In this document: positions 4,524-25,211 of the stretch, in pieces
Numbering within the stretch: the stretch's first letter is position 1
How the letters are laid out: every line of letters begins with the position of its first letter
From: Octopus sinensis
Lineage: Eukaryota
DNA: 25,211 bases
NCBI RefSeq assembly: GCF_006345805.1
Contig: NW_021824827.1
Location: 1-25,211, forward strand
Reading direction: 5' to 3'
Notes under the pieces: model-generated
What the model was told of the DNA's origin: nothing
The model's input: the letters and a program-made list of their open reading frames with translations, nothing else
Databases searched by the model: none
Made by a program: the position numbers and the translations under genes

Positions 4524-5575
4524 CCTCTCTTTTACTCTCTTACTTGTTTCAGTCATTTGACTGTGGCCATGCTGGAGCAGCCGCGCCTTTAGTCGAGCAA
4601 TCGACCCAGACTTATTCTTCGTAAGCCTAGTACTTATTCTATCGGTCTCTTTTGCCGAACCGCTAAGTTACGGAACGTAAACACACCAGCATCGGTTGTC
4701 AAGCGATGTTGGGGGGACAAACACAGACACACTAACTTATACACACACATACATATATATATATACATATATACGACGGTCTTCTTTCAGTTTCCGTCTA
4801 CCAAATCCACTCACAAGGCTTTGGTCGGCTCGAGGCTATAGTAGAAGACACTTGCCCAAGGTGCAACGCAGTGGGATTGAACCCGGAACCATGTGGTTCA
4901 TAAGCAAGCTACTTACCACACAGCCACTCCTACGCCTATAATGATGTATCATCATCATCAACATCATCATATTTTGCCTTTTTACTCACTCCGGGTCGAG
5001 TTTTTTTTCTGGCGACAATCTGGAGAATCCTTCAGCCCTGGCTGTTTGATCCATACCGTGAAGCCAGGAGGTGGCTCTGCGATGATTTGGACAACCATAT
5101 CACGGAATTCTTTTGGCCCTTTTTCTACATAACAGAAATAATGCCAAAAATTAACTGATTATTTTGGCTGGTCATATCTGTTCTCTGGTTCCTTGGTGAA
5201 AACACAACCTTCCAGGACCATAATATACCGATTGATTCGGTTAATGTTAATTAAAACCGGTACAAATAGCACAAAAGTAAAGTAGAGAACATGGGTTGGT
5301 CCCTACAATCACTGGATCTCAATACAATTGGACATTTATGGTGCATTATGGAGCATCAATTAACAAGCTGCTTCTTCTATCATGGTCGCTAAAAGAGCTA
5401 AAATCGGTTTTACTTGAAAAACAGTTATGAATTCGCCTTACAAACTGTTCAGAAGCTGCATGAAACAATTCTTCGACATATAAAAGTGACTAAATCAAAG
5501 GTGAACCATCTCTGTGCTAAATAATAAAATTGCCGTTTAGTAAGGTATTTCCATTATTTCGTCCAACCTTTGTAC
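4020..5575 (+). pseudogene. Tc1-family transposase relic interrupted by SINEs
   Basis: ...NNIFSD before the SINE, then WRQ...CLIHTVKPGGGSAMIW, FQDHN and W...SLDLNTIGHLW-like motifs; many stops and frameshifts. Confidence 0.7.
4375..4936 (-). mobile_element. SINE family 1: partial copy (about 4375-4460) plus full copy (about 4520-4936)
   Basis: Near-identity to the other copies. Confidence 0.88.
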
Positions 5576-5685: not shown

Positions 5686-6353
5686 CGAGGGGTGGGGTGA
5701 AAAGTGTTCCTGGCTTTAGGGGCATAACAAAACGCTTGGTTGGAGGCCCAACCTTCTGAGTTCTTTTACAGGGGTTAGAAAAACTGAAGGATCGCTGCAA
5801 TAGGTGTGTCAAAGGTCGAGCAGAGATGGCTAACGCGTACACTACCGTCAGAAATTAATTAGCACCCTTGATTTGCTCTTCACTCAAGGTATGTGCTGTC
5901 ACCTAGTGGCCATATCTCGAACTATTGCTTTGTTGCGAGTTCACTGTTGCGCAGAAACGATGACGTAACTTTGTTTGCAGAGCAGTTGAGAGAGTCTACA
6001 CACCTTATGATGTTGACATAGCAGTGCAACAACAACTTGGAGTGCGGATGCAGACAAATTCCTTTGTTTAATAGATATAGGTAGCGCCACCGAAATCACA
6101 AACAAACCATACTAAGTTTTCTCATCGCGTAAGACGTTTTGAAACAGCTCATAGGTTAATTGATTTAACCTATTTAATGTAGAAATTTGAGAAGTGCTAA
6201 TTAATTTCTGACGCAAGTGTATATCGCGTTTGTCATCCACTATCGCTTGACCGTCGTGCTCTGAGAAGGGAATATACTGAATGAAGCCATAATTAATTGG
6301 TCCTCCTGTATTTTTCTGTTACTCAAAGCCAGGAACTTTTCAGCATCCCTTCG
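5686..6353. mobile_element. Mariner-type MITE containing nested insertions
   Basis: TIRs CGAGGGGTGGGGTGAAAAGTGTTCCTGGCTTT and (rc) CGAAGGGATGCTGAAAAGTTCCTGGCTTT; TA at the left flank. Confidence 0.75.
5840..6219. mobile_element. Tc1-like MITE, 380 bp, TA target duplication
   Basis: 26-bp TIRs CACTACCGTCAGAAATTAATTAGCAC and CACTTGCGTCAGAAATTAATTAGCAC (24/26); TA on both sides. Confidence 0.85.
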
Positions 6354-6393
6354 TGCAAAGAGGGCTGTATTTGCCATTGCTGGACAGCTTTCA

Positions 6394-6420
6394 TCATAAA
6401 AATACTGGATTCGAGCTGGA
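6394..6420 (-). CDS. Putative terminal exon SSSNPVFL-stop
   Basis: Strong acceptor ttgttgttgttatttacag| at 6421; phase 0 gives a TGA at 6396-6394. Total CDS is 765 nt (254 aa plus stop). Confidence 0.6.
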   Translation of the reverse strand, partial: SSSNPVFL

Positions 6421-6483
6421 CTGTAAATAACAACAACAACAATAAGAACAAAAATTCAATAAACTTCGTAGCAATACAATTAC

Positions 6484-6641
6484 CGGTTTTAAGACACAGC
6501 ATGCTAAGTTCTTATTTTCACACTCATGAATCGGGTCCTCCACGAAGATACCATATGGGCAGCCACCCTTAGACGTCATTTTCGGTAGACAAAAGTTAGG
6601 AATAGGTAGGTTAAGTCCAGGAATTTTTGTACATTGATTAC
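6484..6641 (-). CDS. Exon 4: 6-Cys domain (G)NQCTKIPGLNLPIPNFCLPKMTSKGGCPYGIFVEDPIHECENKNLACCVLKP, beta-defensin-like spacing
   Basis: Acceptor ttttttatag| in phase 1 matching exon 3; donor CCG|GTAATT in phase 0; 158 nt; pattern C-x13-C-x9-C-x12-C-x6-CC. Confidence 0.82.
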
Positions 6642-6679
6642 CTATAAAAAAAACCGAGAGGAACAACAATAATTATTAT

Positions 6680-7448
6680 CCTTTCTATTATAGGAACAAG
6701 GACTAAAATTTTTGGGGGCAAGGGAGATAGTCGATTATATCGACCCCAGTGCGTAACTGGTACTTAATTTATCGACCCCAAAAGGATAAAAGGCAAAGTC
6801 GACCTCGGCGGAATTTGAACTCAGAACGTAGCGGCAGACGAAATACCTATTTCTTTACTACCCACAAGGGGCTAAACACAGAGGGGACAAACAAGGGCAG
6901 ACAAATGGATTAAGTCGATTATATCGACTCCAGTGCATAACTGGTACTTGTTTAATCGACATCGAAAGGATGAAAGGCAAAGTCGACCTCGGCGGAATTT
7001 GAACTCAGAACGTAAAGGCAGACGAAATACCTATTTTTTTTACTACCCACAAGGGGCTAAACACAGAGAGGACAAACAAGGAAAGACAAACGGATTAAAT
7101 CGATTATATTGACCCCAGTGCGTAACTGGTACTTGTTTAATCGAACCCGAAAGGATGAAAGGCAAAGTCGACCTCGGCGGAATTTGAACTCAGAACGTAG
7201 CGGCAGACGAAATACCTATTTCTTTACTACCCACAAGGGGCTAAACACAGAGGGGACAAACAAGGGCAGACAAATGGATTAAGTCGATTATATCGACTCC
7301 AGTGCATAACTGGTACTTGTTTAATCGACATCGAAAGGATGAAAGGCAAAGTCGACCTCGGCGTAATTTGAACTCAGAACCTAGCGGCAGGCGAAATACC
7401 GCTAAGCATTTCGCCCGATGTGCTAACGTTTCTGCCAGCTCGCCGCCT
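6680..7448 (-). mobile_element. SINE family 2, 4-unit array filling intron 3 of the mucin-like gene
   Basis: Periods 184, 185 and 184 bp; a single intact head at about 7448 with A- and B-box-like motifs. Confidence 0.9.
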
Positions 7449-7487
7449 TCTTCTCACCTCTCATTACTATTCACTAGAATAACTTAC

Positions 7488-7868
7488 CTGGCATTTCTGT
7501 CGTGGTGGTCGGTAGCACCATGGTTGTCGTTTGCATAGTGGTGGTGGTAGTCGGTTCCGGGGTGGTGGTCGGTTCTGGAGTGGTAGTCGGTTCCGGAGTG
7601 GTGGTCGGTTCCGGAGTGGTGGTCGGTTCCGGAGTGGTTGTCGGTTCCGGAGTGGTGGTCGGTTCCGGAGTGGTTGTCGGTTTCGGTGTGGTGGTCGGTT
7701 CCGGAGTGGTTGTCGGTTTAGGAGTGGTGGTTGGTTCCGGTGTTGTGGTAGTAGTGGTGGGAAGAGTTGTCGTAGGAGCTGGGATTGTAGTGGTGTACTT
7801 TTCAACGCAGTAATAAATGGACATGGTTCTGTCTGGACATACGTATAATGCATCCGTACAGTTGTCGA
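7488..7868 (-). CDS. Exon 3: (F)DNCTDALYVCPDRTMSIYYCVEKY followed by Thr/Pro-rich mucin-like stalk with 11 P[E/K]PTTT repeats
   Basis: Acceptor atatatttag| and donor CAG|GTAAGT; 381 nt, phase 1-1, open (overlaps track ORF 7474..7824); N-C-T glycosylation sequon. Confidence 0.88.
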
Positions 7869-7943
7869 CTAAATATATTCCCGAACATTTATAACCGGGC
7901 TCAAAACACTGAGGACCTGAAAAAAAAGTTTATGAGGAGATTG

Positions 7944-7960
7944 ACAGACAGATAGACAGG

Positions 7961-8032
<72 letters not shown>

Positions 8033-8057
8033 CAGACAGATAGATAGATAGATAGAC

Positions 8058-8088
<31 letters not shown>

Positions 8089-8089
8089 C

Positions 8090-8130
<41 letters not shown>

Positions 8131-8285
8131 CATAGATAGATATATAGATAGGTAGATAGTAGATAGATAGACAGATAGATAGATAGACAGATAGATAAGA
8201 TAAATAGACAGACAGACAGATAGATAGATAGATAGACAGATTAGATAGATAGATAGATAGATAGAGATAGATAGATAGATAGATA
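7944..8285 (+). repeat. (GATA)n/(GACA)n microsatellite (others at 1026-1112 and 9121-9275)
   Basis: Seen directly. Confidence 0.97.
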
Positions 8286-9120
8286 AGTTTCTTATTGGCC
8301 ACACAGGGCTGCACACAGATGGGACAAATTAACAAGGTAGAGCTTTTCTTTTGGGGGATGAAAAAAAAAGTGGCGTAGGTTTTCGATCAAAAGGGATCGT
8401 AAAAGGGAAAAAACAAAGAAAAAAAGGAAAAGAAACAAAAGAAAAGAAAAAGAAAAAAGAAGAAAAAAGAGGAAAAAAACGATCAATAGGAATCTTGTAT
8501 CACAGTGTCATGATGTACGGTGTAAAAGGGGGAGCAGATAAAGTTTATCCGTGGGAAGAAAAGCCTACGAAAAAGACCACGGTAACCTCGGTCAATATTG
8601 TTATACGTTACCACATTTGTTTGCAAGTGGGTAACCCTCAATTTCTGGGTTCATAGGATTATGCTCAAGGTGGCTTCGTCATTCATACGTGCCATCCTTG
8701 CTACATTCACCCATCTTTTTTTAAAACATTCGCTAGACAAAACTTGCCTCTCTACTCTCACTTTCCTTTTCAAGTGGTACTTGAAGAAGTTGATGAGAGA
8801 TTGACCAGAGAGGAAAGTGTTTGTCTCCAATCCTTTCAGACGCGTCCACCAGATACATTCTTTCGCCATAGCCACAAGGATGATAAAAGTAGCTCTTCCT
8901 TCCCGTTTGAAGGAAGGAGGCGTGACAATATTGACGATATTGGCCCGAAAGTCGTCCCGAACAGGCGGGTCAGGTATTCCTCGTCGACGTCCAGGTTCGC
9001 CCCGAGCTCGTCGTCGTACCTCCCCTCTACTAATCCCCTATAGAATGCTTGGGTTGTGATGGAGTCTCTCAGGGTCGATCCGGGGCGGCAGAGTTGCTTG
9101 AGAGCAACGCGACACTCGTG
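8286..9120 (-). mobile_element. 5'-truncated Tx1-like (L1 clade) LINE 3' end, frameshifted
   Basis: Degenerate ORF2 C-terminus (track ORFs 8836..9369 in part and 8651..8875, e.g. MAKECIWWTRLKGL...KRWVNVARM), T-rich 3'UTR, both ends abut (GATA)n. Family assignment is from recalled motif similarity. Confidence 0.65.
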
Positions 9121-9121
9121 G

Positions 9122-9165
<44 letters not shown>

Positions 9166-9173
9166 CATATATA

Positions 9174-9215
<42 letters not shown>

Positions 9216-9230
9216 GAGAGAGAGCGAGAG

Positions 9231-9276
<46 letters not shown>

Positions 9277-9309
9277 CCACCATACCACACAAATATACGC
9301 ACACGCGCA

Positions 9310-9495
9310 GTCACACGTACACGTATACGATTGGCTTCCGCACAGTTTCCTTCTATGAAATCCCCTCACAAGGCTTTGGTTGACTCGTGTCTATAGTAGA
9401 GTACACTTACCTAAAGTGCCGTGCAGCGGGACTGAACCCGGAACCGCGTGGTTGAAAAGCGAGTTTCTTAAACATGCACCTTATGTTTACGCCTA
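9310..9495 (-). mobile_element. Diverged SINE family 1 variant (5' half)
   Basis: cacaaggctttggttgac...gggactgaacccggaacc motif shared with the family. Confidence 0.75.
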
Positions 9496-9525
9496 CAGAA
9501 TGTATAATTATAGTAACTAAACAAC

Positions 9526-10176
9526 GGATCTTTTCTTTTTGAACGGCAAATGTCAACACAATTTCTAGTGAACTAAACACTTTTAAACTTCGTATACTGG
9601 TAGAATGTGTTTATAAAACATCATTTTCTCTTAGTTTTATTGAGAAAATTCTATAGTTTGTAAGATATTTCGTCTGAAAATCCGAGCATTTCGGCAATTT
9701 TAACCAATAGATTACCTCCATTCAACTAAAATCATTTGCTGCGTCTAAAACTGAGACAACATCCTGTAACTAACCTTAAACCTCCCCCCTAACCCTAACC
9801 CTAACCCTAATTTATTTTTCTTAATCGTTAAATTAATTTAATTCCATTGCTTTAGTTTTTTTACTCGCGTAACAATTAAATTAATTTAACAATTAAGAAA
9901 AAAAAATTAGGGTTAGGGTTAGGGTTAGGGGGGAGGTTTAGGGTTAGTTACAGGATGTTGTCTCAGTTTTAGACGCAGCAAATGATTTTAGCTCAAAAGT
10001 GAGCATAGGATTGGTTAAAATTCGAAAAATTAAACTACGTTAAACAAACAAATTACAATTTTCTCAAGAAAGCCAAGAGAAAAAAATGTTTTATTTTGAC
10101 ACATTCTACTAGTATACGAAATTTTAAAGTGTTTAGTTAACTAGAAATTGTCTGCCGTTCAAAAGGAAAAGATCCC
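9526..10176. mobile_element. About 650-bp palindromic non-autonomous element with (CCCTAA)n/(TTAGGG)n in its arms
   Basis: Termini GGATCTTTTCTTTTTGAACGGCA and TGCCGTTCAAAAGGAAAAGATCC; arms pair along most of their length. Confidence 0.85.
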
Positions 10177-10296
10177 AAAAAACGATAACGAAAGCTTGAC
10201 TAGCCATGTTTAGCTTCTTACCCAGACAAAAAAAAAAAAAAAAAAGTTAGAGAAAAAAACACAGACTTCTGTTAAATCTGATATAGAGGTACTTAC

Positions 10297-10434
10297 AAAT
10301 TGGGCCAGTACGTGGAACTTCTAAAACACATTTAAATTGCCCATTTTCGACACACACAACAGTGGCACCTTTTGACAGACAATCCGGAAATGGTTGTGTA
10401 CAATCGTAAGTTGGTAAGGAGCATTTTGCTGGAC
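10297..10434 (-). CDS. Exon 2: Cys-rich domain (C)PAKCSLPTYDCTQPFPDCLSKGATVVCVENGQFKCVLEVPRTGPI
   Basis: Acceptor atattttcag| and donor T|GTAAGT; 138 nt, phase 1-1, open, non-repetitive and Cys-rich (within track ORF 10247..10462). Confidence 0.85.
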
Positions 10435-10578
10435 CTGAAAATATCACATAAATGATTGTCAAATATATATATATTGATAAAAGTGGTAAGACAACAAAAG
10501 AATGAAAGAGACCTCGTTATTATGTAAATAGAAGACTTTATCTGTAAATGTAATATGTGACAATTATTTGGTAGCCAT

Positions 10579-10639
10579 GATAAAACTCCGAGTTTCAGAT
10601 GTCGGGGTGGAAATCCACGCCGCCATCTCTTCAGTTATC
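10579..10639 (-). ncRNA. Minimal type I hammerhead ribozyme motif (Penelope-like type)
   Basis: GATAA-CTGAAGA-long stem II (GATGGCGGCGTGG/CCACCCCGACATC)-T-GAAA-CTCGGAG-TT-TTATC; 5-bp stem I, near-palindromic stem III, GUU cleavage triplet. Confidence 0.7.
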
Positions 10640-10664
10640 CGGCCAACGGAAAAAATGCTATGAA

Positions 10665-10793
10665 GATGACCGTAAAACAAAGGGTAATTACTGTGTGATT
10701 GTCCGTTATTAAGACAAAAGTGCTATTTGAATGACCGCTAGGGGGTAAAATTGAACATTTTCCCTTTGTTTAAACGGTCATTCTCATAGCATT
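10665..10793. repeat. Short inverted-repeat element (MITE-like)
   Basis: ATGCTATGAAGATGACCGTAAAACAAAGGG pairs with CCCTTTGTTTAAACGGTCATTCTCATAGCAT. Confidence 0.75.
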
Positions 10794-10951
10794 ATATATA
10801 TATATGGAGAGTTTACGAAAAAGAGAAAAGTCGAAGACAGGTGGTGTACAAAACAAACAGATGTATTAGTATAACGCTCAGGAATAGAAAAAGTCTTTTA
10901 CGTTTCGAGCCTATATATATATATATATCTATATATGCATGTATATATGCA

Positions 10952-10997
<46 letters not shown>

Positions 10998-11053
10998 TAG
11001 TGAATTGAAGAAATGGAGTTGAACGAAGATTGAACAGAAATCGTTTTATTGCA

Positions 11054-11133
11054 TTCTACACGTGTTTCGAAAGGCACAATTTACCAAATTCCGATTGAAT
11101 AAGGAGACCATATTGTGTCTTTCTCTTCAGGAA
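11054..11133 (-). ncRNA. Minimal type I hammerhead ribozyme motif with intact core
   Basis: TTC-CTGAAGA-GAAAGACACAAT...ATTGTGCCTTTC-GAAA-CACGTG-TA-GAA; 11/12-bp stem II, palindromic stem III ACACGTGT, GUA triplet, 3-bp stem I. Confidence 0.72.
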
Positions 11134-11285
11134 GAAATAGGAAATCCGTTGGAAAAAACAAAAACAGAACAGAGGCGGAGCAAAACAAATCGAACGAGGC
11201 TCCTAAGAGCCCATGGCCAAACTTTTGATTAATCTGCAACAAGATTATTCATCTTTCTATTTCACAATATATATATATATATAAT

Positions 11286-11329
<44 letters not shown>

Positions 11330-11582
11330 TATACTAATACGATAAAACTTTTTCGAAAAAAATTATTTTCCCCCAAATTTATCAATGGCCAACATGTTAA
11401 AAAATACCTTTAAAGGTTAAATTATAAAACAATTCTAAATAAGGGCAAACAAAAAAATTCTAATGCCAAATATGCCGAAAAATTGGACATATTGTCCATT
11501 AACCATATAATTTTTCACAATACGCACGCTACTCGAAAAAAGGGGACAGAAATTTCTAGAAACTTTAGAAATTGTTTGTTGT

Positions 11583-11628
11583 TAACAACGTTTCGGCTGA
11601 TATACCCTACAACCTTCATCTGGTGCTT
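11583..11628 (-). ncRNA. Degenerate hammerhead motif in a Penelope-like terminal repeat
   Basis: CAGATGA-AGGTTG...CAGCC-GAAACGTT; U4A core change and a disrupted stem I. Confidence 0.45.
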
Positions 11629-11652
11629 TGGGAAAATTTTCTTTCCTAAGGT

Positions 11653-11674
11653 ATTATTATTATTATTATTATTA

Positions 11675-11715
<41 letters not shown>

Positions 11716-11945
11716 CATTATTATTACTATTATTATTATTATCATTATCATTATAGTGAGAGAGCAGTGCATGCCATCATCCAGTGACACTGGGTAAAAT
11801 ATACGAAGCCGTGTATACCCATCATGGCTACCCGTCTGATAAAGGTACACCAGGCACTTGCATCACAACCATATGTGCACGACATGGTGATCTTACATCA
11901 AGATAAACAGTGCTTGACCTTGCAGGTGGGGCCCAGTTAGAATTT
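11653..11945 (-). mobile_element. Shorter, inverted copy of the 24095-24700 element with (AAT)n tail
   Basis: Direct alignment of the two copies. Confidence 0.75.
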
Positions 11946-12106
11946 AATATATATATTATATATATATATATATAATATATATATAATATATATATATATA
12001 TTATATATATATATATACATATATACATATAATATAAATACATATATACAATATATATATATATATACATATAATATATACATACATATATAATAATATA
12101 CATACC

Positions 12107-12154
<48 letters not shown>

Positions 12155-12210
12155 TATATTATAATATACATATATAATTCTACATGTATGTAATATATGT
12201 ATATATATAC

Positions 12211-12243
<33 letters not shown>

Positions 12244-12273
12244 TATGTATGTATATATATTGTATATATATAC

Positions 12274-12334
<61 letters not shown>

Positions 12335-12480
12335 CATATATATATATATTAAATATGTATGTATATATATGTCTATAGATATATATATATACATATATAA
12401 TATATATATATATATATATACATATCTACTATACTATATAGATATCATATATATGTATAATATATACATATATATATACA

Positions 12481-12522
<42 letters not shown>

Positions 12523-12632
12523 TATATACATATATATATATATAATATATATATATCTATATATATATATATATATCTATATATATATATCTTATATATA
12601 TATATTATATATATATATATATATATATTAGT

Positions 12633-12928
12633 GGTGGCACATGGCCTAGTGGTTACACAGCATTGGAACTCGCGGTCGAGGGATCGTGGGTTCGAATTTG
12701 AGATGTGTGTGTTTTATGAGCAAAACACGCAGTTCCAGCGGAAGATAATGGCAAACTTCTGCTGACTCTTTCGCTACAACTTTCTCTCACTCTTTCCTCC
12801 TGCATCTCGCAGCTCACCTGCGACGGACCGGCGTCCGTCCAGGTGGGGAACTTATGCACCAAGGAAACCGGGAAATCGGCCCTTATGAGCCTGGCGTGGC
12901 TCGAGAAGGAACAGGAACAAACAAACAA
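12633..12928 (+). mobile_element. tRNA-derived SINE family 3
   Basis: A box TGGCCTAGTGG, B box GGTTCGAATT, 3' (AAAC)n tail, embedded in TA repeats. Confidence 0.75.
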
Positions 12929-13305
12929 TATATATATATAAGTAATATTAGATGGTAAATGATCTTAATTTTCTTTCCCTTCGAGAATTTATCCCTAATT
13001 AGTGGTTTGAGCTGTTTACTGTTCTTTCTAGCGCAAGGGTTTCCTATGATGGAAGCCTCTTAATGTGTTTTAATGTACACGATATTATATATATATATAT
13101 ATATATGTTATATATTTGTATGTATATATATAATATTATATATATATGTAATATATATATGTTTTTATATATAATGTAATATATATATGTATATATATAT
13201 ATATGTATATATATATATAAATTGTGTATATATATATGTATATATATATAATAAATATGTATATATATATAAATATGTATATATATATATATATATATAA
13301 TATAA

Positions 13306-13354
<49 letters not shown>

Positions 13355-13376
13355 ACATACTACATACATACATACC

Positions 13377-13428
<52 letters not shown>

Positions 13429-13665
13429 TATATATATATATATATATATACTTGTGTGGCGGATGAACAGTCGACTGTGCCGGCCTGTGTGTGTACTTTA
13501 CCCTAACCTATTTTTATCGACCTCTGAAAGATGAAAACGGCAAAGCTGACATCGTTAGGATTCGAACTCAGAATTTACATTTACGTTTACATTGGGATAT
13601 GCCAATCCTTCCACCAACTCTTCCAAATCAAACATATAATAGCTATAAGAAATCATCTAACTTAC

Positions 13666-13726
13666 ATGAAGCCAAAGCCGAGCAGAAAATTCCACACAGA
13701 AGTAGGAAATATATTGTTTGTGACAT
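13666..13726 (-). CDS. Exon 1 (coding part) of secreted Cys-rich/mucin-like protein: signal peptide MSQTIYFLLLCGIFCSALA-S, phase-1 end
   Basis: ATG at 13726-13724, 20 codons forming a hydrophobic core ending in A-L-A, then T|GTAAGT donor at 13665. The phase-1 T joins GT of the next exon to give Cys. Not in the ORF track frame. Confidence 0.8.
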
Positions 13727-13820
13727 TATTCTGGCGTTGGTAGTTTCTTGCAAATGAAATAGCCTTTCGCTTCTTGGGCGTTCGAAGGAAATACAGAACC
13801 AAAAGATAAAGCAACTGGTA

Positions 13821-13845
13821 CTCCCTTTTAAATAAGAATATATTA
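13821..13845 (-). promoter_or_regulatory. TATA-like box (TATTTAAAAG) or, alternatively, a splice acceptor about 100 nt upstream of the ATG
   Basis: Motif at 13834-13825. The two readings cannot be told apart from sequence alone. Confidence 0.25.
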
Positions 13846-13904
13846 CAACACACTATTGATTACGCTGTGTCTAATTAGCAGATGTCAAGTGGTGTGTATG
13901 TCTC

Positions 13905-13943
<39 letters not shown>

Positions 13944-14053
13944 TTGTGCGTGATGTGTGTAGGGTGTTCATGTGTTAAATTAAATATTTATATCTACGAA
14001 TAAAGAACTGTTGCCCCCCCCCAGTATGTTTCTGTTACGTATGTATGAATGTA

Positions 14054-14104
<51 letters not shown>

Positions 14105-14121
14105 GGTATACATACATACAT

Positions 14122-14154
<33 letters not shown>

Positions 14155-14204
14155 GTATGTGTATATACATACATGTATATTATGTATGTGCGTGCGTGGT
14201 GGTG

Positions 14205-14779: not shown

Positions 14780-14819
<40 letters not shown>

Positions 14820-14926
14820 CGGTGTTTGGGTGTGCGTGACTTCAGCCGTTCGAGATGGCGGCCTTTAGAACCAGCAGTTGTAATAGCGGTTGTGTAAAGC
14901 AATCTTAGTTTTATTTACATTTAAAA

Positions 14927-15002
14927 TGATGATGACGACGACGACGATGACGATGACGACGATGATGACGATGATGATGATTATGATGATGATGATGATG
15001 AC

Positions 15003-15041
<39 letters not shown>

Positions 15042-15143
15042 AATGACGATGATGATGATGATGATGATGATGGTGATGGTGATGATGATGATGACGATGA
15101 TGATGATGATGACGATGATGATGATGATGATGATGATGATGAA

Positions 15144-15176
<33 letters not shown>

Positions 15177-15455
15177 TGATGACGATGATGATGATGATGA
15201 CGATGATGATGATGATGATGAAGATGATGATGACGATGATGATGACGATGATGACGATGATGATGATGATGATGATGACGACGATGATGATGATGATGAT
15301 GCCTCTGATGGTAACGACGACGGTGATGACAATGATGACGCTGCTGATGATGATAATGACGATGATGATGATGATGATGATGATGACGATGATTATGATG
15401 ATGATGGCGATAATGATGAGACGACTAGGACTATGATAATGATGATGATGATGAT
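14927..15455 (+). repeat. (GAT)n/(GAC)n trinucleotide array
   Basis: Seen directly. Confidence 0.97.
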
Positions 15456-16336: not shown

Positions 16337-16533
16337 CAATAATTTTATTACTCGTTTCAAATTTTGTCACAAGGCCAATAATTTCAGTGGCGGGAGTAAG
16401 TCGATAACAACGACTTCAGTGTTCAACGGGTACTTATTTTATCGACCCCGAAACGATGAAAGGCAAAGTTGACCCTGGTTGAATTTGAACTCAGAGCGTC
16501 GGAAGATATGCCGTAAAGCATTTTTTTACGATC
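16337..16533 (-). mobile_element. 5'-truncated SINE family 2 copy with about 20-bp target-site duplication
   Basis: Direct repeat ctgctaggatatattt(t)aaat at 16316-16336 and 16534-16553. Confidence 0.7.
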
Positions 16534-16574
16534 CTGCTAGGATATATTTAAATTAGTAATCTGATAACTGTTTG

Positions 16575-18020
16575 AAGGCAGCGAGCTGGCAGAATCGTTA
16601 GCACTTCAGGAAAATGCTTAGCGGCACTTGGTAGGTCTTTACGTTCTGGGTTCAAATTCCGCCGAGGTCGACTTTGCCTTTCATCCTTTCGGGGTCGATA
16701 AATTAAGTACCAGTTACGCAACTGGGGTCGATATAATCGACTTAATCCGTTTGTCTGTCCTTGTTTGTCCTCTCTGTTTTTAGCCTCTTGTGGTAGTAAA
16801 GAAATAGGTATTTCGTCTGTCTGTACCTTCTGAGTTCTATTTCCGCCGAGGTCGACTTTGTCTTTCATCCTTTTGGGGTCGATAAATTAAGTACCAGTTG
16901 CGTACTGGGGATCGATCTAATCGACTAGCCTCTTCCCGCAAAATTTCGGGCCTTGTGTCTTGAGTAGAAAAGAATAATAAATTAATAATTATCCCTCCTA
17001 AGATTTGGCAGAGAAGGAGACTAGTCCATTTTATTCGAAACCCGTGTTCAACTGGTACATAGTTTTTCGACCCCGAAATGATGAAAGACAAAGTAAACCT
17101 CAGCGGAATTTGAACGCAAAACTTAAAGGGCCGGAAGAAATGCTACGGATGATTGTGTCTGATGCGCTAAAAGATTCTGCCAGCTGACCGCCTTATTAAC
17201 AACAACAACCCTTTTTAATATAGGTACAAGGCCTGAAGTTTTGGGTGTTGGGGCTAGTCGATTACATCGATTCTAATGCGTAACTGGTACTTATTTATTC
17301 AACTCCGAAAGGATGAAAACCAAAGTCGACCTCAGCGGAATTTGAACTCAGAACGTAAAGACGGACGAAATGCTGCTAAGCATTTTGCACGGCGTGTTAA
17401 CGACTCTGCCAGCTCACCGCCTTAACGATAATGACAATCCTTTGTACTATAGGCAAAAGGCCTGGAATTTGTTGGGAGGGATCCAGTCGATTACATCGAC
17501 ACCATGGCTCAACTGCTACTCATTTTATCGATCCCGTAAGGGTGGAAGGGAAAGGTGACCTCTGTGGAATTTGAACTCAGAACGTCAAGGCAGACGAAAT
17601 GCTGCTAAGCATTTTGTCCAGTGTGCTACCATTAATAATCATAATAATCCTTTCAACTAAAGGTACAAGGCCCGAAATTTTTGGTGAAGGTGACAAGTCG
17701 ATTACATCGGCCCTAGAACGCAACCGGTACTTAATTTATCGACCCCGAAAGGATGAAAGGCAGAGTCGACCTCGGCGGAATTTGAACTCAGAACGCAGCG
17801 ACAGGCGAAATACCTATTTCTTTAAGGACAGACAAACGGATTAAGTCGATTACATCGACCCCAGTGCGTAACGGGTACTTAATTTATCGACCCTGAAAGG
17901 ATGAAAGGCAAAGTCGACCTCGGCGGAATTTGAACTCAAAACGTAACAGCAGACGAAATACCTATTTCTTTATTGCCCACAAGGGGCTAAACATAGAAGG
18001 GACAAACAAGGACAGACTAA
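16575..18020. mobile_element. Pile-up of about 8 SINE family 2 units (a + strand dimer at 16575-16985, then minus-strand copies)
   Basis: Repeated gaaaggatgaaaggcaaagtcgacctcggcggaatttgaactcagaac core in both orientations. Confidence 0.88.
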
Positions 18021-19942: not shown

Positions 19943-20165
19943 TTCTTTACTACCCACAAGGGGCTAAACACAGAGGAGACAAACAAGGACAGACAAACGG
20001 ATTAAGTCGATTACATCGACCCCAGTGCATAACTGGTACTTAATTTATCGACCCCGGAAGGATGAAAGGCAAAGTCGACCTCGGCGGAATTTGAACTCGG
20101 AACGTAACGGCAGACGAAATACGGCAACGCATTTCGCCCGGCGTGCTAACGTTTCTGCCAGCTTA
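19941..20165 (-). mobile_element. SINE family 2 monomer
   Basis: Same core; tail abuts a TA repeat. Confidence 0.88.
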
Positions 20166-22389: not shown

Positions 22390-23249
22390 ACTCTTAGGAG
22401 TACTTGTGTCTTCTTTTTTTTTTTGTGGGTGAGGAACTTAGTGATGGGCAGTTACTGGCGCTGTCTTTTCTTCTGTGTAAGGAGGTTTTTATAAACTTCT
22501 ATGGCTCCGTCGATTGCATTTCTGAACTGCAACGCACGAATCATCCGGGGGTCACAATCTTCCGCCATTTTCTGAAGTTCTTTTCCCGTTTTTGCTAGAG
22601 ATGTGAGGCGTTCTAGTGATAGGCCGCCCCTGGATCCTCTTGTTCTTCTTACCACCCGTTTCGCTATCTTCTTAAAAGTCACTTTTGCCGTCACCCTTAC
22701 ATATCTTTCATCCTTCTTGATGTAGCGAACGGTAGATTCATTGATGCCGTAATGGCGGACTACACCCGCAACCTTCATCCTTTCTTAAGCATGTCGAGGA
22801 GTCTCACCTTCTCTGCTATAGAAAGCATCTTCCTCTGGCACTTGGTTCACAGCCAGAAGCCTTAGAATGTGCAGAACGTTCAGGCGACATCGTAGGGCTT
22901 GAAATAAATTCACAATTCTACACAAAAATGCAAAACAACACCACAGACTCGCCTCCCGGGTTTGGTTTTCCATAAAGTATGTGCGATTCTTTGTTTACCC
23001 CTCTTCGGTACATTACGTATTTTCTTTTAATATATTTTAATTAATGTATTTTATTTATTAATGTTAAGTGTGAAGATGATTATTTTATCACAGAAACAGT
23101 TAGAAACTAAAAAAATATAAATACCTATCGGCCGCAGAAACCCTCGATATACTAGGAGTCCGCGATATAAATTTACATATACTAATCAGAAAAATCCGCG
23201 ATGTACTGGAGGCGCGATAGGTGAACAGCGACATAGTGAGTGATTACTA
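22390..23249 (-). pseudogene. Internally deleted Tigger/pogo transposon; transposase relic from ATG at 22890
   Basis: N-terminal HTH-like RKMLSIAEKVRLLDMLK..VVRHYGINESTVRYIKKDE fused to C-terminal LQFRNAIDGAIEVYKNLLTQKKRQRQ*LPIT; frameshifts; Tigger-like terminus near 23249. Confidence 0.8.
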
Positions 23250-23456: not shown

Positions 23457-23636
23457 CCTGTTGTTGATGAGGAAATTCCAAAGAAGGAACCTTGGATCTA
23501 GGTTAGAAACCGGTTCTTTCTCTATGAGCAAGAAATCTTGAAATAAACTGAATAATGACATGCATACATACAAAAATATTCTGTTGTTGAAATTCTAATG
23601 AGGAGGCCTTGGATCTAGCTTAGAAATGGCTCTTTT

Positions 23637-24025
23637 AGGAATGGTCGTGTGTCGCTTGAAGACCGACCTCGTTCGACCTCCCACACGAATGAAAACATCC
23701 CGAAAATTCATGAACAGAACCCGGAGGACCCTCATCGAACAACTGACGAACTTGTTGACATGATTGGTGTGTCCTGGAGTTTCTGCCAACGAAGTTTGAG
23801 CGAAGAGTTGCGAATGAAAAGAGTTGGGGCAATATTTGTGCCTCGCTTGCTTACGGGAGATCAAGAAGCAGTCACATCTGAATGAGGGATCCCTCTTGCT
23901 CACTCTCCCTTTCTTCTTGTTCCTGTTCCCTGCGACTTTATTTTTGTTCCCCCCAAACGAAAAATATCCTAAAAGGAAAACGTTTTGCAGATGTGGAAGA
24001 AGTGAAGAAAAAACGTTTTTGGTTC
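23637..24025 (+). pseudogene. Internally deleted mariner transposase relic
   Basis: SLEDRPRSTS...RTTDELVDMIGVSWSFCQRSLSEELRMKRVGAIFVPRLLT, then degenerate CDF-LFP and KGKRFADVEEVKK motifs. Confidence 0.8.
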
Positions 24026-24094: not shown

Positions 24095-24700
24095 TGCAGT
24101 ACCAGGCAGTGGCTCTCATGGCTTCTGATCTTAACTGATTGGAAGTGTTATCATGTGCATTGTTTTGTCTTGGTATAAAAGATGGGCTACAGCAAATATT
24201 CTGCTCAATACCACAGATTTGCTTGTCAGTTGTTTGACCTTAACTACTTGAGCATGTCCCTTAGTGGCTGACGATATGTGCATCTCTGATCACGAGCAGA
24301 AGTAGTGGGGGAGCATCATAACCGTGTGTTGAAAGGAATTCTTTGGGGTTTGAATAATTCACCTCTGGAAACATGGGTGGTTCTTTCAACATCCTTAAAC
24401 AACCCTTATTCAGGGACCTTTTGAGCGGGATGGGCTACTCAACCTGAAGAAAATTCTAACTGGGCCCCACCTGCAAGGTCATGCGCTGTTTATCTTGATA
24501 TGAGATCACCATGTCGCGCACATATGGTTGTGATGCATGTGCCTGGTGTACCCTTATCAGACGGGTAGTCATGATGGGTATATTGGGCTTCGTATATTTA
24601 ACTCCAGTGTCACTTTGATGGCATGCACTGCTCTCTCACTCAATAATAATAATAATAATAAATAATAATAATAATAATTATAATAATTATAATAATAAAT
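24095..24700 (+). mobile_element. Non-LTR retroelement 3' region ending in an (AAT)n tail
   Basis: Its last about 190 bp match 11756-11945 in reverse complement; both copies end in AAT repeats and differ in 5' truncation. Confidence 0.7.
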
Positions 24701-24729
24701 AATGTAATAATAATGATGATGAGATGATG

Positions 24730-24781
<52 letters not shown>

Positions 24782-24879
24782 AATAATAAAATAATAATAA
24801 TAATAATAATAATATAATTATAATAATAATAATAATAATAATAAAATAATAGTAATAATAATAATAATAATAATGATGG

Positions 24880-24910
<31 letters not shown>

Positions 24911-24926
24911 AATAATAATAATAATG

Positions 24927-24990
<64 letters not shown>

Positions 24991-25211
24991 GAAGAAGAAG
25001 AAGAAGAAGAAGGCTTGTTGATGGTGAAACGTTAATGAGTTTGTGGGTTGATGAGGTTAGCAGAATAGTAATAAATAATTGCACCATTAAGACCACCAGC
25101 ACCGCCCCACCACCGCCGACACAACCACCAGCACCGCCACCACCACTACCACCACTACCAATACCACCATCACCACCACCACCACTACCAAAACCGCCAT
25201 TACCAATACCA
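24643..25211 (+). repeat. Compound (AAT)n/(GAT)n/(GAA)n array followed by degenerate (CAC)n
   Basis: Seen directly. Confidence 0.95.

Follow-up and report, generated by a model that had tools for sequence, protein, structure and literature searches.

The minus strand of a 25,211-nucleotide (nt) stretch of the Octopus sinensis genome (positions 1 to 25,211 of contig NW_021824827.1, assembly GCF_006345805.1; hereafter the window) carries a five-exon gene model, which probably represents a real, unannotated gene for a secreted, soluble, non-polymerising mucin-like glycoprotein of approximately 250 amino acids in its mature form. In the model, a signal-peptide exon is followed by two phase-1/phase-1 exons, each beginning a block of six cysteines, then by a repeat stalk and by a six-cysteine tail on an exon of its own. 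The product is most likely a taxon-restricted, monomeric secreted protein with two unclassified ends predicted to be rich in disulfides.

Gene model and coding potential

Translation of the region read (6000-14200) reproduces the minus-strand model, with a coding sequence (CDS) of 813 nt and a product of 270 residues, the frame being unbroken and free of internal stops across the CDS. Every intron is bounded by GT and AG, with splice phases of 1, 1, 1 and 0 and the donors GTAAGT (three introns) and GTAATT (one intron). The exon ends read T/GTAAGT (exon 1), T/GTAAGT (exon 2), G/GTAAGT (exon 3) and CCG/GTAATT (exon 4), and the acceptors of exons 2 to 5 are, in order, ttttcag, ttttttttcag, ttttttttatag and ttatttacag. 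A cysteine codon is split as T/GT at the exon 1/exon 2 junction and again at the exon 2/exon 3 junction, both at phase-1 introns, as is typical for shuffled extracellular modules. The exon 1 ATG is preceded by an in-frame stop 44 codons upstream, and the ends of the gene are supported by consensus matches to a TATA-like box upstream and to ATTAAA downstream (Table 1).

On both strands of the window, only two open, non-repetitive exons flanked by AG and GTRAGT contain at least five cysteines: the neighbouring exons 2 and 3, which share a strand and are compatible in phase. Two such exons were reached in 2 of 200 block-wise, composition-preserving shuffles, a test that did not require collinearity, phase compatibility, a signal-peptide exon or a third cysteine-rich exon.

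The original prediction for this locus had proposed five exons with canonical splice sites and phases of 1, 1, 1 and 0, as well as a cysteine codon created at the exon 1/exon 2 junction; all of these were reproduced, with the fifth exon hinging on the splicing of intron 4. Its product length of 254 residues is corrected here to 270. The overall design that it described, a dumbbell-shaped secreted protein, is supported by the signal peptide, the two cysteine-rich and putatively disulfide-bonded ends and the PTS spacer between them, and its stalk of about 100 residues corresponds to the 102 found.

Table 1 Features of the gene model in the window (all on the minus strand).
Feature	Coordinates	Strand	Description
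TATA-like element TATTTAA, candidate core promoter	13828..13834	-	108 nt upstream of ATG; pattern search, consensus match only
Exon 1 (CDS part)	13666..13726	-	ATG at 13726-13724; encodes MSQTIYFLLLCGIFCSALAS and the first base of Cys21; donor GTAAGT, phase 1
Intron 1, 3231 nt	10435..13665	-	Mostly (AT)n microsatellites and dispersed repeats
Exon 2, phase 1-1	10297..10434	-	Head block A, C-PAKCSLPTYDCTQPFPDCLSKGATVVCVENGQFKCVLEVPRTGPI; 6 Cys counting the split first codon
Intron 2, 2380 nt	7917..10296	-	(AGAT)n arrays, palindromic element with 123-nt arms, degenerate repeat open reading frames (Pfam-negative)
Exon 3, 5' part	7795..7916	-	Head block B, C-PQCFEPGYKCSGIYLVDNCTDALYVCPDRTMSIYYCVEKY; 6 Cys counting the split first codon
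Exon 3, 3' part	7488..7794	-	102-residue Thr/Pro/Glu stalk (PTS or mucin domain); donor GTAAGT, phase 1
Stalk core	7546..7743	-	Eleven 18-nt tandem units encoding TPEPTT or TPKPTT
Intron 3, 846 nt	6642..7487	-	Nearly all a tandem array of a 184-nt unit resembling a short interspersed element (SINE)
Exon 4	6484..6641	-	Tail domain G-NQCTKIPGLNLPIPNFCLPKMTSKGGCPYGIFVEDPIHECENKNLACCVLKP, spacing C-13-C-9-C-12-C-6-CC; donor GTAATT, phase 0
Intron 4, 63 nt	6421..6483	-	In frame, stop-free, pyrimidine-rich 3' end; would encode VIVLLRSLLNFCSYCCCCYLQ if retained
Exon 5 (CDS part)	6394..6420	-	SSSNPVFL, then TGA (6394-6396); second TGA directly after
ATTAAA, candidate polyadenylation signal	6173..6178	-	216 nt past stop; pattern search, consensus match only
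ATTAAA, second candidate polyadenylation signal	6067-6072	-	322 nt past stop; consensus match only

Signal peptide and cysteine-rich head

Across the protein, Kyte-Doolittle hydropathy is highest in the window of residues 5-23, and A-L-A occupies positions -3 to -1 of the predicted cleavage site. Cleavage would thus follow Ala19, and the mature polypeptide has a calculated mass of approximately 26.9 kDa and an isoelectric point (pI) of 4.6. This hydrophobic core and the A-x-A before the cut agree with the signal peptide that had been proposed for the locus.

The head that follows has a net charge of -2.9 and contains 12 cysteines, arranged as six and six in two blocks, in place of the single nine-cysteine domain of the original prediction. 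Block A has the spacing C-3-C-6-C-6-C-8-C-7-C and block B the spacing C-2-C-6-C-8-C-6-C-9-C, and each opens at a phase-1 exon boundary with a split cysteine codon. The only N-x-T sequon of the protein, N85-C-T, lies in block B. When the two blocks are aligned, five of the six cysteines coincide, with 29% identity and a common start CP..C..P.Y.C. From their spacing and exon phase, the two blocks are likely, though not proven, to be copies of one module. Scorpion helix-hairpin toxins were the best Foldseek match to a model of block A and were rejected (E = 1.4, probability 0.1, with a model of low confidence).

Threonine/proline stalk

The 102-residue stalk is composed of 54 threonines (53%), 27 prolines (26%) and 10 glutamates among its main residues and has a net charge of -8.8; Tandem Repeats Finder describes its core as 11.4 copies with a period of 18. 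As a long Thr/Pro tandem-repeat stretch in a protein that bears a signal peptide, it has the composition of a mucin-type (PTS) domain, which is a compositional class and not a homology family. This composition suggests that the stalk may be densely O-glycosylated.

Pairwise comparison of the eleven stalk units gives 109 differences, of which 91 are at the third codon position, every one of them synonymous. This pattern argues for coding constraint without choosing a strand; the strand is assigned because of the splice sites and the continuity with the cysteine-rich open reading frames (ORFs). On the plus strand, an antisense ORF of the form (VVVGSG)n covers the stalk minisatellite (7502-7813), with an internal ATG at 7520 and without splice or signal context.

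Tail domain

The tail contains six cysteines, including a CC pair that is followed by VLKP and then by SSSNPVFL from exon 5. It carries five Lys and Arg residues against four Asp and Glu residues, giving a charge of about +0.3 at pH 7.5 and a pI of 7.8. A moderately confident single-sequence AlphaFold2 model of the tail exon (predicted local distance difference test score (pLDDT) of 77) has three β-strands (16-20, 33-35 and 46-51), the last of which holds the CC pair. No significant match to this model was found with Foldseek in the PDB; the best had E-values of 6.6-7, and a plant defensin was among them with a probability of 0.02.

The tail had been described as a six-cysteine domain ending in CC. 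The six cysteines and the CC pair are present, and the pair stands 12 residues before the C terminus rather than at it.

Proposed mode of action

After removal of the signal peptide, the 18 cysteines (12 + 6) would form nine intradomain disulfides. Because each end holds an even number of cysteines, no free thiol would be left for polymerisation, and the protein is predicted to be a monomer. In the Golgi, N-acetylgalactosamine (GalNAc)-transferases would load the 54 threonines of the stalk, giving a stiff, acidic bottle-brush of approximately 25 nm that would keep the two compact binding modules apart. In a secretion such as mucus, glue or an egg or gland product, the protein could act as a lubricating or hydrating spacer, and it might also form a bivalent bridge between matrix components or surfaces. 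A specific ligand, or a specific site such as the mucus, skin, egg coat or saliva of the original prediction, is far less secure than the secreted mucin-like glycoprotein itself.

A more specific version of the bridging role is possible but doubtful. It holds that the head blocks and the tail represent two undescribed, octopod-restricted types of disulfide-rich domain, joined by a glycosylated rod into a bivalent cross-linker. With similar reservation, such a cross-linker might be a dedicated part of a cephalopod-specific secretion, for example an egg-festoon cement, an adhesive mucus of the suckers or skin, or a gland product.

Searches for relatives

At E <= 10, neither head nor tail matched a Pfam family, and scanning the head a second time gave no match either. 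The sole Pfam match of the whole protein, Trypan_PARP (E = 0.51), was rejected as a sub-threshold, compositional match arising from the stalk. PDB sequences yielded no meaningful match to the head, to the tail or to a two-row profile made from the head blocks. When 5.8 billion proteins were searched by word index, with the signal peptide, head and tail as the query, no match at E <= 10 was returned, and phmmer, run exhaustively with the tail exon on 1.84 billion representatives, gave no credible relative; the head was thus covered by the word index, Pfam and PDB sequences, and the exhaustive search covered the tail exon. No relative was found in a metagenome scan, no match in a full-text search with peptide strings, and no paralogue when the head, tail and signal peptide were compared with the window by tblastn.

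The only two matches in the exhaustive search, P0001 (E = 7.7e-9) and P0002 (E = 7.5e-6), are proteins made of tandem 57-residue repeats (MESCPSHCETSATRQSLRKL...). They match a 34-residue stretch of the tail at approximately 24 bits per repeat and keep one of four cysteines. Their apparent significance arises because four to six weak repeat matches are summed, and they were rejected as repeat-inflated chance matches.

As a control on the database, a mariner-like ORF elsewhere in the window (23619-23882, plus strand) matches one protein, the uncharacterized LOC106874918 of Octopus bimaculoides, with 62% identity (NCBI, UniRef). Since this search retrieved an Octopus bimaculoides protein, the 5.8-billion-protein database holds an annotated octopus proteome. 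The locus had been described as unannotated-looking and lineage-specific, which fits the lack of a relative in a database with Octopus bimaculoides proteins. That its family was not recognised is borne out by Pfam, the PDB, Foldseek and both large protein searches. A full-length match to a characterised family, which the original prediction had named as an outcome that would count against it, did not appear in the searches run.

Comparison with known secreted proteins

The closest proteins in design are the Drosophila glue mucins Sgs3 and Sgs1, which are small and secreted, with a signal peptide, conserved short cysteine-containing ends and, between these, heavily O-glycosylated Pro/Thr tandem repeats (PMC10835880). 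These genes and the octopus gene share a phase-1 intron at the end that encodes the signal peptide (PMC10835880). The Sgs1-3-7-8 family is characterised by a C-terminal motif, IRxC[L/V]C, and by a phase-1 intron that interrupts the signal peptide at residue 10 (PMC10835880). The octopus gene differs in having five exons rather than two and richer cysteine-containing ends (12 + 6), with no sequence relationship to the Sgs proteins. A regular-expression search found no occurrence of IRxC[L/V]C in the 270-residue product, and the octopus phase-1 intron falls behind the signal peptide, at codon 21.

Among vertebrate mucins, MUC7 is a small, soluble, non-gel-forming protein in which PTS repeats lie between short non-repetitive ends, and it has very few cysteines. 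The octopus protein resembles it as a predicted monomer of a few hundred residues without the VWD, C8, TIL or CTCK domains of polymerisation. Unlike in MUC7, both of its ends appear to be dense disulfide modules, and no homology was detected. Pfam scans of the whole protein, head and tail at E <= 10 revealed none of the domains of gel-forming mucins (VWD-C8-TIL, cystine knot).

Insect peritrophin-type intestinal mucins have the arrangement chitin-binding domain, mucin, chitin-binding domain. Here too, cysteine-rich modules are held apart on a Thr/Pro spacer that is predicted to be O-glycosylated; however, the octopus blocks are approximately 40 residues long and have other cysteine spacing, and neither head nor tail gave a CBM14 (peritrophin-A) match at E <= 10.

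Alternative explanations

Several observations weigh against a functional gene for a secreted mucin-like glycoprotein. The signal peptide, which was identified from hydropathy and the A-x-A motif, has no basic n-region. Block A, with Gly substituted for the split first Cys in the modelling, gave a poor single-sequence AlphaFold2 model (pLDDT of 62, a short helix and a β-hairpin), and the similarity between blocks A and B is not significant against shuffles (244/2000). The antisense frame of the stalk (VVGSGV) is equally synonymous, as the wobble positions coincide, and the repeat units are not independent of one another. Both O-glycosylation and disulfide pairing are inferred. No orthologue was found in the databases searched. 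A non-functional locus, be it a pseudogene, a proto-gene of recent origin or a chance succession of ORFs around an 18-nt minisatellite, would suit several observations: no search returned a homologue, the product is missing from a database that includes the Octopus bimaculoides proteome, the minisatellite is open in three minus-strand and two plus-strand frames, and the surrounding DNA is very rich in repeats. We nevertheless consider such an origin unlikely, given the four splice-site pairs, all intact and compatible in phase, a signal-peptide start, 18 cysteines in even sets, the absence of any stop or frameshift, and the rarity of such cysteine-rich exons in the shuffles. A further point against it is that automated annotation often skips small genes that contain repeats.

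The tail raises the separate question of whether the cysteine-rich ends are the active parts of a host-defence effector, with a β-defensin-like or clip-like tail or a protease-inhibitor-like head and with the stalk as a spacer or pro-region. β-defensins and big defensins follow the approximate consensus C-x(4-8)-C-x(3-5)-C-x(9-13)-C-x(4-7)-CC and form a three-stranded antiparallel sheet with C1-C5, C2-C4 and C3-C6 pairing. The octopus tail is similar to the β-defensins and to the C-terminal domain of big defensins in its six cysteines ending in CC, in the lengths of its last two loops (C3-C4 of 12 and C4-C5 of 6), in its three predicted β-strands, and in its placement on its own exon behind a phase-1 intron. 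However, its first two loops (C1-C2 of 13 and C2-C3 of 9) are far longer than in either group, its charge is close to zero rather than strongly cationic, and it is joined to a mucin stalk without dibasic processing sites on either side. A likeness to the clip domain, known from arthropods, extends to a six-cysteine pattern ending in CC in a small β-sheet domain at one end of the protein, but there is no serine-protease domain, the first loop is longer, just 12 residues follow the CC pair, and PF12032 (clip) gave no Pfam match. More broadly, no defensin, CLIP, WAP, Kazal, TIL or antistasin family of Pfam matched at E <= 10, and there was neither a PDB sequence match nor a significant Foldseek match. 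A defence role is therefore quite improbable on this evidence, and the term defensin-like, which the original prediction had applied to the tail, is not supported as a statement of membership; judged from loop lengths, charge and searches, it is a resemblance of cysteine pattern only.

The remaining alternative concerns the 3' end of the gene. Intron 4 (63 nt) reads through in frame within a 91-residue ORF (6394-6669), and because it is in frame and free of stops, the last splice cannot be deduced from the logic of the frame. Its retention would give a product of 291 residues with a 21-residue hydrophobic, cysteine-rich insert, which creates a second hydrophobic window (Kyte-Doolittle value of 1.85 over 19 residues, at residue 255) as strong as the signal peptide. 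If the intron were kept, always or in some transcripts, the product could be a membrane-tethered type I surface mucin, in which the tail is followed by hydrophobic VIVLLRSLLNFCSYCCCCYL with a palmitoylatable cysteine cluster and by a nine-residue cytoplasmic end. The donor, GTAATT after CCG, is also the weakest of the four. Even so, intron 4 has the appearance of an intron, beginning with GT, ending in CAG and containing a long (TTG)n/T-rich tract; the CCCC run of the insert is this (TTG)n pyrimidine tract read in frame, an Arg interrupts the hydrophobic stretch, and the five cysteines of the insert would make the total odd. We regard the tethered form as quite improbable. By hydropathy scan, the spliced product has no hydrophobic segment beyond the signal peptide and no glycosylphosphatidylinositol (GPI)-like tail. 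The absence of a transmembrane segment, as originally claimed, thus holds for the spliced 270-residue product and is conditional on the splicing of intron 4, because retention creates the second hydrophobic window. The same interval (6421-6483, minus strand) could allow a switch between soluble and tethered isoforms.

Repeats and surroundings of the gene

The window is very rich in repeats, including SINE-like families, microsatellites, a palindromic element and trinucleotide arrays, and all five exons lie clear of the dispersed repeats. A second convincing gene was not found in it: eight other ORFs in introns and flanks had no Pfam match above threshold, and Rfam and ARAGORN searches of the window returned nothing.

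Within intron 3, the tandem SINE-like array (6729-7400) comprises 3.6 copies with a period of 184 nt and 91% matches, and the family recurs at approximately 2630-2960, 16400-18000 and 20005-20120. The same family is present in a 20-kb Octopus bimaculoides locus (L001, around LOC106874918) with 75-88% identity, and these matches are clear of the exons. Together with the mariner-like match, this marks the window as octopod-like. Intron 2 contains a near-perfect palindrome (9721-9996), in which two 123-nt arms, 96% complementary, enclose a loop of 30 nt; approximately three to four CCCTAA/TTAGGG telomere-like units occur in each arm, and the whole looks like a miniature inverted-repeat transposable element (MITE) or a foldback element. 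The microsatellites of intron 2 include (AGAT)87 at 7938-8285, 21 nt from the exon 3 acceptor, and (TAGA)38 at 9122-9275, and those of intron 1 include (AT)349 at 11947-12628 and (AT)190 at 13082-13450. Such long intronic microsatellites could hinder the assembly and annotation of the gene.

Also in intron 1, a 152-nt dispersed repeat (11794-11945) has a second copy at 24451-24602 in the opposite orientation, 92% complementary. By eye, the segment at 12630-12710 resembles the head of a tRNA-derived SINE (GGTTCGAAT-type box), and ARAGORN and Rfam detected no tRNA in the window. Further candidates identified by eye, all Pfam-negative, are the degenerate mariner-like transposase fragment used as the database control, a Tc1-like fragment (4881-5129, plus strand) and an ORF resembling a helix-turn-helix protein (22455-22784, minus strand). 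Trinucleotide arrays of the ATC/ATT/GAT type at 14815-15440 and 24630-25000 give rise to artefactual poly-Ile/Ser/Asp/Met ORFs of 150-200 residues.

Significance

The finding has no bearing on a long-standing open question. Taxon-restricted secreted genes of the cysteine-rich or mucin-like kind are common in animal genomes, and a gene of this sort causes little surprise. It can reasonably be put forward for annotation and for follow-up in the secretome and proteome, for which the predicted tryptic peptides of the product include GATVVCVENGQFK, CVLEVPR and IPGLNLPIPNFCLPK. If expressed, the gene would add to the octopus secretome a short, easily missed member that automated annotation has apparently skipped, and its two compact cysteine-rich modules without detectable relatives would be possible founding members of new domain families. 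The gene could then also serve as a marker or handle for the biology of cephalopod mucus, adhesives or egg coats.

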